A DNA stretch of 64,000 bases from Malacoraja senta. Its lineage: Eukaryota. Numbering within the stretch: position 1 is the first letter of the stretch; the number at the start of each line of letters is the position of its first letter. The stretch spans positions 61,876,001 through 61,940,000 of the forward strand of contig CM075977.1 in NCBI GenBank assembly GCA_038087875.1, read 5' to 3'. The notes under the pieces were generated by a model that saw only the letters and a list, made by a program, of their open reading frames with translations, did no database searches and was not told the origin of the DNA. Shown here piece by piece: positions 1,971-55,150 of the stretch. Made by a program: the position numbers and the translations under genes.

Positions 1971-3201
1971 ACAAAAATGCTGGAGAAACTCAGCGGGTGC
2001 AGCAGCATCTATGGAGCGAAGGAAATAGGTAACGTTTCGGGCCGAAACCCTTCTTCAGACTGATAGGGGGTGGGGAGAAGAAAGGAAAAAAGGAAAAGGA
2101 GGAGGAGGAGCCCGAGGGCTGGGGGAGGGGCGGAGACAACCAGATGGCTGATGAAGGGGAGGGGACAGCCAGGGCTAGCAGAATTGGGAGAATTCAACGT
2201 TCAGGCCACCAGGATGTAGACTGCCCAAGCGGAATATGAGGTGCATTTCCTCCAATTTACGGTGTTGCTCGCTGTGGCCATGGAGGAGACCCAGGACAGA
2301 GAGGTCAGATACGGAATGGGAGGGGGAGTTGAAGTGCTGAGCCACCGGGAGTTCAGGTTGGTTATTGCGGACCGACCGGAGGTGTTCGGCGAAACGATCG
2401 CCAAGCCTCCGCTTGGTCTCACCGATGTAGATCAGCTGGCATCTAGAGCAGCGAATGCAATAGATGAGGTTGGAGGAGATGCAGGTGAACCTCTGTCGCA
2501 CCTGGAACGACTGCTTGGGTCCTGGAATGGAGTGGAGGGGGGAAGTGAAGGGACAAGTTTGCATCTCTTGCGGTTGCAAGGGAAAAGTACCAGGGGAGGG
2601 GGTGGTATGGGAGGGAAGGGAAGAATTGACAAGGGAGTTACGGAGGGAGCGGTCTTTGCGGAAGGCAGACATAGGGGGAGATGGGAAGATGTGGCGAGTG
2701 GTGGGGTCACGTTGGAGGTGGCGGAACTGACGGAGGATCACTTGTTGTATGTGACGGCTGGTGGGGTGAAAGGTGAGGACTAGGGGGACTCTGCCTTTGT
2801 TGTGAGTGGGGGGATGGGGAGAGAGAGCAGTGTTGCGGGGTATGGCAGAGACCCTGGTGCGAGCCTCATCTATGGTGGAGGAGGGGAACCCCCGTTCCCT
2901 GAAGAATGAGGACATTTCAGATGCCCTGGTGTGGAACGCCTCATCCTGGGAGCAGATGCGGCGTAGACGGAGGAATTGGGAGTGGGGATGGAGTCCTTAC
3001 AGGAAGCAGGGTGGGAAGAAGTGTAGTCCAGATAGCCATGGGAGTCGGTAGGTTTGTAGTGGATGTCGGTAAGGAGTCTATCACCTGCGATGGAGATAGT
3101 GAGGTCAAGGAATGGTAGGGAAGTGTCGGAAATGGTCCAGGTGTATTTGAGTGCCGGATGGAAGTTGGTGGTGAAGCGGATGAAGTCAGTCAGTTGTGTA
3201 A
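1971..3201 (-). mobile_element. 5'-truncated Penelope-like element (RT C-terminus + GIY-YIG)
   Basis: ORFs 2870-3244 (LPFLDL, YKPTDSHGYLDYTSSHP) and 2175-2915 (LIYCIRCSRCQLIYIGETKRRL). Hammerhead core at 2031-2058. Near-TSD TGTTCAG(C)TGGTAC at 1958-1970 and 3202-3215. Confidence 0.92.
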
Positions 3202-12295: not shown

Positions 12296-12544
12296 GTGGG
12301 TTCCAGCCAGAATGTTATCAGTAAAGTTCAACCATTTTTAAATTTGAACATCTTAAAAACTGAAAAAGATTTACACAATTAAATCTTTTTCCGAAAGGGG
12401 AAAGGGCACATTTAATATCTATCTAAACCTGTCCAGTGACCAATGAATTAATGTCTTTATCAATAGTCCGGAGGGATCATTGAATTTGGAATTATGTCAT
12501 TTGATGTGCATCTGATATGGAAAAAAAACTCTTGGTCAGTTGGT

Positions 12545-12683
12545 CTTCTTCTTCTATCGTGTGGCATGCACAGCCTAAAGTTGTTGGACAACTTGTTCTA
12601 TTTGATCTTCCGTTTGTACACGTCGAGTTGATTGCATTAGTCGAAACAGGGCGGACCACGTGAAGGTTGCAATCTTCCACCCC
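12545..12683 (-). mobile_element. 139-bp non-autonomous retroposon with ribozyme head and (GAA)n tail (possibly Ingi/Vingi-type partner)
   Basis: Flanked by GGTCAGTTGGT (12534-12544) and GGCCAGTTGGT (12684-12694). The 3' end reads ...GCCACACGATAGAAGAAGAAG. Confidence 0.75.
12630..12683 (-). ncRNA. Minimal HDV/CPEB3-like self-cleaving ribozyme (predicted)
   Basis: Minus strand reads GGGGUGG AA GAUUGCA ACC UUCACGU GGU CCGCCCU GU UUCGA CUAA UGCAAUC. This gives P1 (7 bp, G1-U wobble), P2 (7 bp, all Watson-Crick), P3 (3 bp), L3 UUCACGU, P1.1 and J4/2 CUAA; P4 is essentially absent. Confidence 0.85.
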
Positions 12684-13489
12684 GGCCAGTTGGTAAAGAG
12701 GGAAATAGTACAGGAGTCGCTGCCTCGAAAAGACAGCCAGCATTGTCAGAGACCCACATCACACTGGCCACTTTCTCATTGCACTCCTGTCATTGGGAAG
12801 AAGGTATAGGAGCCTGAAAACTAACATCCAGGATCCTTCTTCCCAACAACCATCAGGCTATTAAACACTATGACCAAATAAGCTCCAAACTATATTGACT
12901 TAGGTGCATTGTTTTGTCTTTGCTCTAATATTGTTTATTTGTTTTTTAATATACTGAACTTTTGTTGTTGTTTATTATGGTGTTTACAGAGTATTATGTT
13001 CCCATATCTGTTGGACTGTTGCAAGTAAGAATTTCATTGTGCTATTTTGGGATATATGACCATAAAACAAGAGTCTTGACGACTTTTGAAAACCTAACAG
13101 TGGACTAGGCATCTGGGAGGGGTGCTGCATTGATCAAAAATATTGGGGAAGGAGTTATAGACGGATTAAGACTAGAGGGGGTCTTCAAAGGATGAAAGTT
13201 AAGGCTCCCATAGGGCAACATCGAGGTGTTAGGTACTTGGGGGGAGGGTCCGGACCCAGCATTGATTTGAGAGCCAGGGCCAGAGAGACAATTGGGAGTT
13301 GGAGCCAGTAGTGTGTGTTTCTAGGACACAAAATAGCTTTAAAACATTAATACAACCTATGATTGACAATGTGGACTAATTTCCCTGCAAATGTTACAAA
13401 AGGAAGTTCAAACGAAAGCTTTTCCTTTATGAGTCCCCTCCATGAAAGATAGAAGTGATTATGGAAGAAATACACGTGAAGAAATAATG

Positions 13490-46162: not shown

Positions 46163-47015
46163 CCAGACCAAGTGCAGACCCGTTGGGTCTGTTCCCCCAA
46201 CGTGCGGTTGCGGGGGGGGGGGGGGCAGGGGCGGCATGTGGCATCACACACACTAACTACCACCCCGCACACACGCTAACTACCCCCCTTGATATTATAT
46301 TAATATTATTAATTTGCTCCTTTTACCTCATACCCGGGGTGGGGGAAGGGGAGGGGAGAGGGGAAGAGGGGGAGGTGAGAGGAGAGGGGTGGGGGAGAAG
46401 AGGGGATAGGGGAGATGGGGAGGAAGAGGTGGAGGGGAGAGGTGGAGAGAGAGTGGAGGGGGAGAGAGAGGAGGGGGAGAGAGAGAGAAGGGGGAGGAGA
46501 GAGAGAGGAAGGGGGAGAGATAGAAGGGGGGAGTGGGGGAAAGGCATGGGGGTGGAAGGGAGGGAGGGAGGGGAGAGAGATCTCCCACCCCTGTCCCATT
46601 GTGATGGCATATGTAAATGAGATCCATTGTGATTAGACATCTGTGAGATGGCACTGACTCATGCAGCAGTTTGATTTTATTGGAACCACATGAAGATTCC
46701 AAACTCCCACACCTTTCCCATTGGGCTGTCATATATGTAAATGAGATCCATTGTGATTGGACATCTGTGAGGTGGCACTGACTCATGCAGCAGTTTGCTT
46801 TTAAATTTTTTTGATGTTTTGTGAACAATTTTATTCAAAATCTGGGGAAATAATTGACCAAATCTAGAGAGGAGTGCATTTATGAAATTGTAAGTTAAAT
46901 CCCTACCGAATTGTAAAAATCTCTGCGTTTTTGCGTCTGGTTTTCGAGGAGATACGTTTCAAATGCAAAATGCCATACATCCACACACACACACAGAGTT
47001 TTAAAAGTATGTAGA
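46163..47015 (-). mobile_element. Non-autonomous Helitron
   Basis: 3' end CAGACCCAACGGGTCTGCACTTGGTCTGG nearly identical to the 22350-22958 copy; 5' block related to the 36075-38340 copy. Confidence 0.75.
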
Positions 47016-52200: not shown

Positions 52201-54753
52201 AACAAGCCCTGGTTCACTGCAGAACTCAGACAGCTCCGACGTCTAAAGAGGAGGCCTACAGGAGCGGGGATGCAGACCTTCCTACAGGCAGGCCAAGTAC
52301 AAGTTGAGAAGAGGAATCAGAGCTGCCAAGGAAAGGTACTCTGAGAAGTTGAGGAGCAAGTTCTCAGCTAGCGACTCTTCTTCAGTTTTGGAAGGGCTTG
52401 CAAGAAATTACCAGCTACAAGAGGAAAGCCCCCCGCTCTTTGGACAATCGTCAGCTGACCAACGATCTGAATGAGTTTTACTTCAGGTTTAAAAATCAGA
52501 TACGTAACCCTGGTACCCCCTCCCTCCCTCCCCAACCAACACAGTCAGACCCCAGTCTACAAAGAATGGACTCTGCATCCTCTCCTTCCCATTCACCACT
52601 TCACACCTACTTAAGCAAGACTCCAGTATGAAAAGACTGGACCATTTCCCACCCCAACCAACACTTCACACCCACTCACAGCCTGACCTCAGTCTGCAAA
52701 GACTGGGCCCTTCTACACCCACCCCCCTCCAATCACCACTTCATACCCAATCACCCACACCCTCTGTGCTGCACAACATAACATCCAATGTCAACAATAA
52801 AAATAGAGGAGGTGGAGAAGCTTTTCAGAGGACAAAAGAGCCGGAAATCTCCAGGACCTGACAATGTTTCCCCCTCTACTCTTAAGCTCTGTGCCAAACA
52901 GCTGGCACCGGTCTATACAGATATTTTTAACCAGTCCCTGCAAACATGTATTGTCCCTGCCTGCTTCAAAGTCTCCAATATTGACCCTGTACCCCAAAAG
53001 GCAAGGATTACTTGTCTTAATGACTACAGGCCTATCGCACTGACCTCTGTAGTCATGAAGACACTCGAAAGGCTTGTGCGCTGGCCAAGCTGAAAAATAT
53101 CACAAACTCCCTGCTGGACCCTCTGCAGTTTGCATATCGGGCCAATAGATCTGTGGATGATGCAGTCAACCTGGGCCTGCACTTCATCCTACAGCACCTA
53201 GACCACCAGGGGACCTATGCGAGGATCCTGTTTGTTGATTTTAGCTCTGCATTTAACACCATTGTGCCAGAGCTACTACACTTCAAACCTTCCGAGTTGA
53301 CTGTGCCTGAACCCCTCTGTCAGTGGATCACCAACTTCCTGACAGACAGGAAGCAGCATGTGAGGCTGGGAAAGCACATCTCGGACCCGCAAACGCTCAG
53401 CATAGCAGCACCGCAAGGCTGCGTACGCTCTCCTCTCCTCTACTCTCTCTACACCAACGACTGCACCTCCACAGACACCTCTGTCAAGCTTCTCAAGTTT
53501 GCGGATGACACAACCCTGATTGGACTGATCCAGGATGGGGAGGAATCTGCCTATAGACAGGAAGTGTCACAGCTGGCGTCCTGGAGCCGTAGCAACAACC
53601 TAGAGCTCAATGCTCTTAACACAGTGGAATTGATTGTAGGCTTTAGGAGAGCTCCCCCTCCGCTCACCCCACTCACCATCAACAACACCACAGTCACATC
53701 TGTGGAGTCTTTTAAGTTCCTGGGAACCATCAGCTCCAAGGACCTTAAGTGGGGGGCCACCATCGACTCCACAGTCAAAAAGGCACAACCGAGGATGTAC
53801 TTCCTGCGGCAGCTGAGGAAGCATAATCTGCCACAGGCAATGATGGTCCAATTCTACATCGCCATCGTAGAGTCAGTTCTCACCTTCTCCATCATGGTCT
53901 GGTTTGGCTCAGCCACCAAGCACGACACCTGGAGGCTGCAGCGAATCGTCCGATCAGCAGAGAAGATTATTGGCTGCAACCTCCCCTCCATTGATGAACT
54001 GTACACTGCAAGGGCCAGGAAGCGAGCGGGCAAGATCATCTCTGACCCCTCTCACCCTGGCCACAAACTCTTTGAATCACTTCCCTCCGGAAGGCGACTC
54101 CGGACTTTCAAAGCTGGCACAGCCAGACATAAAAACAGTTTTTATCCACGAGTAGTTGCTCTACTCAACAGCCAAAAATCTGTAGCCTCCCTTTGATCTG
54201 GTATTTTGTTGGTTCACATGCTTGATCAATGGTGTTTTATCATTGATGTCTTATTATTATTAATGTTTCGTGTTTTCTGAGTCATTCGTAACTGTCACTG
54301 TATGTCATGTTGTCACTTGTGGGCGGGGCACCAAGGCAAATTCCTTGTATGTGAATACTTGGCCAATAAACTTACTTACTTACTTACTTACAACAGGATC
54401 ATGGGGGACCCCTTCCACCCCAGCAACAGACTGTTCCAGCAGCTACGGTCAGGAAAACGCCTCCCTTGCCATGCTGTGAAAACGGAGAGGATGAGAAGGA
54501 GCTTCTTCCCAGAGGCCATTAGGACAGTAAACTCCTATTTCACCAGGGACTAAACTACTGTACCAATTTACTGTTGTGTGGTGTATTTTTAAATTGCTTT
54601 TTCTTCTTTTTTTTTCTCTCCCCGCAAATATGTAATTACTGATTCTGTTCCATACTGTTTTGTAGTTTTTTTGCACAATCCGCAAGCATTGCCACTTTTC
54701 ATTTCACTGCACATCTCGTATGCGTATGTGACGAATAAACTTGACTTGACTTG
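49255..54753 (+). mobile_element. Near full-length Rex1/Babar LINE (APE endonuclease + RT, frameshifted), split by a second Rex1 element
   Basis: NVQSL, LTETWL, VYIP, AGDFN, GKSDH (APE); [30 protein letters not shown] (RT). The C-terminus resumes at 54391 (RIMGDPFHP...SFFP). Tail AATAAA(CTTGA)n. Confidence 0.9.
52103..54390 (+). mobile_element. Nested 5'-truncated Rex1/Babar LINE
   Basis: ORF 53153-54196 (347 aa; LFVDFSSAFNT, KFADDTT, KKAQPRMYFLR) and its own tail AATAAA(CTTA)n. CAAC on both flanks. Confidence 0.9.
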
Positions 54754-54884
54754 AAGCAATTCTTGTGTGAGACCTGTGATGGATTTGCAAATGAGATGAG
54801 CCACAACATTCTGAAGTAAACAGCTCTTTTGGCAGGTGCAACCTCTTTTCATTGGCATAAATATAGCAGAATTAGTTCAGTATA

Positions 54885-55150
54885 GTTCCAGCCAACTGTG
54901 TCCATGCTGTCCATCCGTTCACATTAGTTCTATGTTATCCCACTTTCTCAACCATTCCCTACACACTAGGGGCAATTTGCGAAGTCAATTAAACTACAAA
55001 CTCGCACGTCTTTGGGACATGGGAAGAAACCGGAGCAGCCGGAGGAATCCACGCGGTCACTCCACACAGACAGTGGCCAAGGTGAGGATCGAACCCGGGT
55101 CTCTGGCGCTGTGGGGTTGCAGCTCTACCAGCAAAGCCACTGCGCTACCC
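54885..55150 (-). mobile_element. tRNA-derived SINE
   Basis: Reverse complement of the B-box (GGATCGAACC) and SINE core. Confidence 0.75.

Follow-up and report, generated by a model that had tools for sequence, protein, structure and literature searches.

Ribozymes of the HDV type are known to define the 5' ends of a few LINEs and of rare or protist-specific non-autonomous derivatives of them. In Drosophila rDNA, the R2 and R2/R1 SIDEs are short non-autonomous non-LTR elements without a Pol III promoter, which carry a 5' HDV-like ribozyme that cuts the element out of a co-transcript and a 3' end borrowed from a LINE (PMC3414825). These SIDEs insert only in 28S rDNA, are rare (a few to tens of copies), possess a full-size R2 ribozyme with P4 and a long J1/2, and have a known parent LINE. 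In trypanosomatids, the NARTc, RIME and SIDER elements with the Pr77/L1TcRz head are abundant, dispersed short non-autonomous retroposons whose first ~77 nt are an HDV-like ribozyme that cleaves just upstream of itself (PMC3185411, PMC4035085). They live in read-through (polycistronic) transcripts, belong to the L1Tc/ingi clade, end in poly(A) tails and have a head that doubles as a promoter and was shown to be active in vitro. Conversely, the mammalian CPEB3 ribozyme is a single-copy, intron-resident ribozyme conserved in mammals, with a P4 hairpin and a CGAA J4/2 (PMC4836649). P4 itself is dispensable, since minimal HDV-like ribozymes of about 50-60 nt in which P4 is replaced by a short linker, namely drz-Mtgn and the theta ribozymes, are catalytically competent (PMC10879173; Riccitelli 2014 as cited in PMC6326823). 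These come from metagenomes or gut phages and sit next to tRNAs. Other classes of self-cleaving motif process retroelement RNA out of co-transcripts as well, such as hammerhead ribozymes in retrozymes, which have a tandem or circular biology, and in Penelope-linked elements (PMC7229834), and twister variants in Schistosoma LINEs (PMC8501958). Classical SINEs, for example eel UnaSINE1 with its partner UnaL2, are elements of 100-300 bp with a high copy number, a target duplication, a tRNA, 7SL or 5S Pol III promoter head, and a 3' stem-loop plus short tandem-repeat tail that is recognised by a stringent LINE reverse transcriptase.

Here, we analysed a 139-bp insertion on the minus strand at positions 12545-12683 of a 64,000-nt stretch of Malacoraja senta DNA (GCA_038087875.1, contig CM075977.1, forward-strand positions 61,876,001 to 61,940,000; hereafter the window). 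The initial annotation described it as a retroposon headed by a minimal HDV/CPEB3-like ribozyme, and this observation is confirmed in every element. The first 54 nt (12683-12630) have the full architecture of a minimal HDV-like ribozyme, in which G1 (12683) would be the first base of the predicted cleavage product. The P1 5' strand GGGGUGG (12683-12677) pairs with CCGCCCU (12654-12648) over 7/7 positions, with wobbles at G1.U36, which closes P1 at the predicted cleavage site, and at U5.G32. J1/2 is AA, and the P2 5' strand GAUUGCA (12674-12668) forms seven Watson-Crick pairs with UGCAAUC (12636-12630). P3 (ACC/GGU, 12667-12655) encloses L3 UUCACGU (12664-12658), of which C22 pairs with G37 following P1' to give a P1.1 of a single C-G pair plus U.U. 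G37, U38 and the linker UUCGA, which takes the place of the absent P4, occupy 12647-12641, and J4/2 is CUAA (12640-12637), opening with the putative catalytic C44 (12640). The head is followed by a variable body segment (12629-12595), a 7-bp hairpin AAGUUGU-CCA-ACAACUU (12594-12578) that is a candidate recognition element for a reverse transcriptase, and a (GAA)n tail AGAAGAAGAAG (12555-12545). The hairpin was predicted in both the MFE and the centroid folds, although the z-score of the whole-element fold was uninformative (0.85). The element is flanked by a target-site duplication, ACCAACTGGCC (12694-12684) immediately preceding G1 and ACCAACTGACC (12544-12534) immediately following the tail, which match at 10/11 positions (8 exact), with a chance of about 8e-6 at one register.

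The fold alone proves little under a permissive definition. A loose HDV descriptor found 7 sites in the window and 1.6e-5 hits per position in first-order Markov sequence. A stricter descriptor, requiring a P4 replacement of 12 nt or less and a C-N-A-A J4/2, gave 0 hits in 2.56 Mb of simulated sequence and only this site in the window. The key point is that the motif begins at exactly the base which independent data mark as the 5' end of the family. In Rfam searches the only match was HDV-F-prausnitzii, full-length and at exactly 12630-12683, but at 16 bits compared to a gathering score of 44. These models cannot score the P2 pseudoknot and penalise the loss of P4. The HDV_ribozyme model did not match, nor did the CPEB3 model at E<=10 in an 86-nt search. 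Likewise, no 5S, 7SL, tRNA or snRNA match was found in Rfam, ARAGORN found no tRNA, and no A box is present, such that the Pol III promoter head of a classical SINE was not found here.

To determine whether the element belongs to a family, which had been set beforehand as a test, we aligned four sequencing runs to 12380-12850. Of a DNA run of the same species (X1), 12,736 contigs fell on the element, of a run of a second organism (X3) 11,028 and of an RNA run of a third organism (X15) 756, the fourth being oligo-dT RNA-seq of the same species (X39). Sampled words of the 139 bp are moreover present in runs labelled with about ten organisms and in many small RNA runs. Summed word depth is 1-3 million inside the element and 9 in the unique left flank, which is not a copy number and which we read only as an order of magnitude, roughly 10^4-10^5 copies. 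Depth drops about 200-fold between the bins 12668-12683 and 12684-12699 and more than 1000-fold below 12540. The dominant loose ends, at which contigs and reads diverge into unrelated sequence, sit at exactly 12683 (313, 275 and 27 contigs and 1,149 raw RNA reads), and their continuations have no consensus (agreement 0.34-0.43). The loose ends and the depth cliff fall at 12683 in four runs. Further loose ends sit at 12544-12547, where the continuations start with more GAA units. Copies therefore start at G1 and end in a tail of variable length, and as depth does not decay gradually towards the 5' end and the boundary at G1 is sharp, the element is not a 5'-truncated 3' fragment of a LINE. Of the X1 contigs, 1,182 are at least 99% like this copy, so a young subfamily exists. 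A major subfamily has a body that is 7-8 nt shorter near 12610-12620, reading ...UGCAAUCAACCCGGCGUGCACAAUCAAAU... across 12610-12636, but keeps the P2 3' strand. It shows up as loose ends at 12609 in 318 RNA reads and in 125 and 90 contigs.

Within the window, the element has a single copy. Neither blastn-short nor a covariance model built from three ribozymes and run with filters off found a second one, and a partial hit of 11 bits at 46683-46708 is not a copy. That the element is an insertion is documented by one X1 contig (349 nt, depth 9.1), which joins 12528 to 12684 with AACTCTT between and reads left flank, A-run, CTCTT, one GGCCAGTTGGT and AAAGAG, i.e. the pre-insertion site with a single copy of the 11-bp target, namely the one at 12684-12694. 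As its flank differs from the window at 5 of 149 bases, it is either a divergent allele or a paralogous empty site, but either way it documents insertion with an 11-bp duplication. A run of eight T (12521-12528, minus strand) that lies 5 nt downstream of the 3' target duplication would terminate Pol III, but is probably incidental because the empty-site contig also carries it, as an A10 run.

Among the best-supported family variants, to which the comparison was limited so that damaging variants at lower frequency cannot be excluded, three fall in the 54-nt head and ten in the 85-nt body, most variants lying at 12595-12629. Those in the head are A8>G in J1/2, G32>A, which turns U5.G32 into U5-A32, and U45>G (about 35% G), which turns CUAA into CGAA. 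CUAA and CGAA are the two J4/2 forms seen in known HDV-like ribozymes, and CGAA in CPEB3 fits PMC4836649. All three are compatible with the fold, although G32>A is also what CpG decay would produce and is thus weak evidence, and no well-supported variant falls at the C or the AA of J4/2. The 3' hairpin is among the deepest (best conserved) bins, and its only well-supported variant is in the loop (12585, about 60%).

A scan of metagenome contigs for the core string returned two contigs, JACSEG010032002.1 (L001) and JACSEG010039345.1 (L002), which have 31-32% GC and no similarity to the window outside 57 nt, but both carry the same head. P2 differs from the window at five positions, yet all seven pairs hold, as U13-A52 becomes G-C, G14-C51 becomes A-U and, in one contig, A11-U54 becomes G.U. 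P1, P3, L3, G37 and CUAA are unchanged, and one extra U is present in the linker region. Under the pseudoknotted structure all 18 pairs hold in the three sequences (54 of 54 cells), whereas slid controls pair only 32-50%. With only three sequences, the two compensatory pairs in P2 and two one-sided compatible changes gave a score that was reached by 48 of 500 shuffles. Rfam gave no hit for L001 or L002. In these contigs (L001:744-1191 and L002:316-752) homology continues at least 280 nt upstream of G1 and about 110 nt downstream, so there the ribozyme is not the first base of the repeat but lies inside a longer repeat of at least 475 nt, which may hint at how such heads originate. The 61-nt segment following the ribozyme recurs 415 nt upstream in L002 and a 90-nt segment is duplicated in L001. 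A pattern of the body gave 0 hits in metagenome contigs, and core patterns gave 0 hits in prokaryotic genome contigs and in viral contigs.

In X39, about 3,970 reads from 5% of the run lie on the family, of which 92% run on into unlike flanking sequence, indicating that copies are transcribed as parts of longer RNAs, and RNA contigs of 1.8 kb embed copies. No position showed an excess of read starts or ends, and about two thirds of the reads that reach G1 continue upstream. Since this library is unstranded and poly(A)-selected and most copies are diverged, this does not exclude cleavage, but it is no evidence for it and argues against efficient cutting of bulk copies, which are mostly uncut, or antisense, at steady state.

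Compared to the Drosophila SIDEs, P3 ACC/GGU and the 7-nt L3 (UCCUCGU in R2, from the primer sequences in PMC3414825) closely resemble ACC-UUCACGU-GGU here, but this family is dispersed, has on the order of 10^4-10^5 copies and has a 54-nt P4-less head, without an identified parent. Compared to the trypanosomatid elements, there is no sequence similarity, the tail is (GAA)n, the host looks vertebrate (teleost-like LINE reverse transcriptases, a tRNA-SINE and Penelope), and activity is inferred from sequence alone. With CPEB3 the element shares the identical L3, the numbering of G1.U36, U20, C22, A23 and G25, the one-pair P1.1 plus U.U, the GU after P1' and a 4-nt J4/2 opening with the catalytic C (putative here) (PMC4836649). 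As the P3 and L3 pattern is equally that of R2, however, 'CPEB3-like' describes the core and does not establish descent, and thousands of contigs carry copies with random flanks, unlike the single intronic CPEB3 copy. The P4-less drz-Mtgn and theta ribozymes are not at the head of a eukaryotic retroposon. With classical SINEs the element shares its short, non-coding nature, high copy number, target duplication and LINE-type tail, whereas the Pol III head is replaced by a ribozyme fold. Ribozyme-headed non-autonomous retroposons and active P4-less HDV-like ribozymes are thus already known; what looks new here is the combination of a dispersed element, a very high copy number, an apparently vertebrate host, a minimal head and a simple-repeat tail. 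No paper describing this family or its core string was found in the searchable literature, which did not include Dfam and Repbase.

The best explanation, to which we assign a probability of about 0.72, is that 12545-12683 is one fairly young copy of a very abundant, non-coding, promoter-less non-LTR retroposon. In this view, copies are transcribed passively as parts of longer host transcripts, after which the first 54 nt would fold into a P4-less HDV-type nested double pseudoknot and cut the RNA immediately 5' of G1, creating the exact 5' end of the element whatever lies upstream. A LINE reverse transcriptase would then recognise the 3' hairpin and (GAA)n tail and copy the RNA into a nicked target by target-primed reverse transcription up to the cleaved 5' end, resulting in full-length copies that begin at G1 and are flanked by a target duplication of about 11 bp. 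Our data establish the family with its exact shared ends and show the architecture, the target duplication with its empty site, the read-through RNA and the pair-preserving variation. The HDV-like ribozyme fold is well supported, whereas catalysis and the identity and mode of the reverse transcriptase are inferred. Besides the lack of an excess of 5' ends at G1 and the low Rfam score, the single-pair P1.1 and absent P4 indicate that the fold may be slow or weak. The interpretation in the initial annotation, a promoter-less SINE that cuts itself out of read-through transcripts and is mobilised by an Ingi/Vingi-like LINE, is therefore partly supported: the retroposon nature, the common start at G1, the absence of a tRNA-type head and the read-through transcription hold, whereas self-cleavage remains a prediction and nothing here supports the Ingi/Vingi idea.

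Alternatively, the family could be a real retroposon whose 5' end is set by transcription initiation, either from a dual promoter/ribozyme sequence, for which Pr77 is a precedent (PMC4035085), or from an unrecognised Pol III/Pol II element, the HDV-like fold being a non-catalytic relic or a structural handle for the reverse transcriptase. The absent excess of RNA 5' ends at G1, the weak Rfam score, the weak P1.1, the missing P4 and a linker GTTTCGA that loosely resembles a B-box core would fit this, but we consider it unlikely given the lack of any tRNA, 5S, 7SL or snRNA similarity, the TTTT inside the head of the metagenome relatives, which would terminate Pol III, and the 92% of RNA reads that are parts of longer transcripts. 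The intact core residues and the compensatory P2 changes, though in only three sequences, point to selection on the RNA fold, and a complete HDV descriptor match at exactly base 1 of the family is very improbable by chance. A tentative refinement, which does not exclude the main explanation, is that the element is an internally deleted SIDE- or NARTc-type derivative of a full-length LINE in the same genome with the same ribozyme and the same hairpin/(GAA)n 3' end, rather than having recruited its head independently. All known ribozyme-headed non-autonomous elements arose this way (PMC3414825, PMC4035085) and the ribozyme of the metagenome relatives sits inside a longer repeat, but no RT-encoding element with either terminus lies in the window.

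A chance look-alike is very improbable despite the loose-descriptor hits and the sub-threshold Rfam score, in view of the strict descriptor, the start at exactly the family boundary and the occurrence of the same head in an unrelated AT-rich repeat with compensatory P2 changes. A retrozyme- or satellite-like element producing monomeric or circular RNAs from tandem copies is even less likely in this genome. Ribozyme-bearing tandem repeats exist in animals (PMC7229834) and the metagenome contigs show local duplications around the ribozyme, but here the copies are dispersed single units with random flanks, a target duplication and a simple-repeat tail, without a tandem array and with only one copy in 64 kb.

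If cleavage occurs, a dispersed, very high-copy, promoter-less short retroposon with a minimal ribozyme head would add a fourth kind of SINE head beside tRNA, 7SL and 5S, show that a 54-nt P4-less delta fold is enough for a successful genomic parasite, and supply thousands of natural sequence variants for studying the fold. It would also raise the question of how a genome tolerates so many potential RNA-cutting sites inside its transcripts, and offer a concrete candidate source for domesticated ribozymes such as CPEB3. It remains possible, though tentative, that this is a new type of vertebrate SINE in which a 54-nt P4-less HDV-like ribozyme replaces the Pol III promoter, recently active (near-identical copies, an empty site in the same species), present at roughly 10^4-10^5 copies in several related species and therefore the largest known reservoir of HDV-like ribozymes in any animal genome, of which sense-oriented copies could cut thousands of host transcripts. 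A bolder extension would be that the mammalian CPEB3 ribozyme, with its same L3 and core numbering, descends from an exapted copy of such a retroposon head.

Regarding other repeats in the window, LINE reverse-transcriptase fragments (RVT_1 plus the PF09004 signature) lie at 53153-54760. A protein search returned only teleost LINE RTs at or below 70% identity (best relatives 63-70%), and none of ten ORFs of the window had an exact protein match on record. The 3' ends of these fragments finish in (ACTT)n at about 54375-54395 and (ACTTG)n at about 54735-54755, not in (GAA)n, and no LINE partner of the element was found in the window. Next to this region, a tRNA-derived SINE-like sequence (GGGTAGCGCAGTGG...GGTTCGATCC on the minus strand) is present at about 54990-55150, and an ORF at 2175-2915 (minus) with a weak GIY-YIG match (21.8 bits, just under the cut-off) suggests a Penelope-like element remnant. 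Finally, immediately upstream of the element, 12709-12832 holds a fragment of another high-copy repeat, with a summed depth of 5e4-3e5 in two organisms and sharp boundaries at 12709 and 12822, of which other copies continue with a shared consensus (GTAACGTCCAGGTTCAGGAACAGCTTCTTC, agreement 0.71) and which is covered by an RNA contig of depth 1,263.
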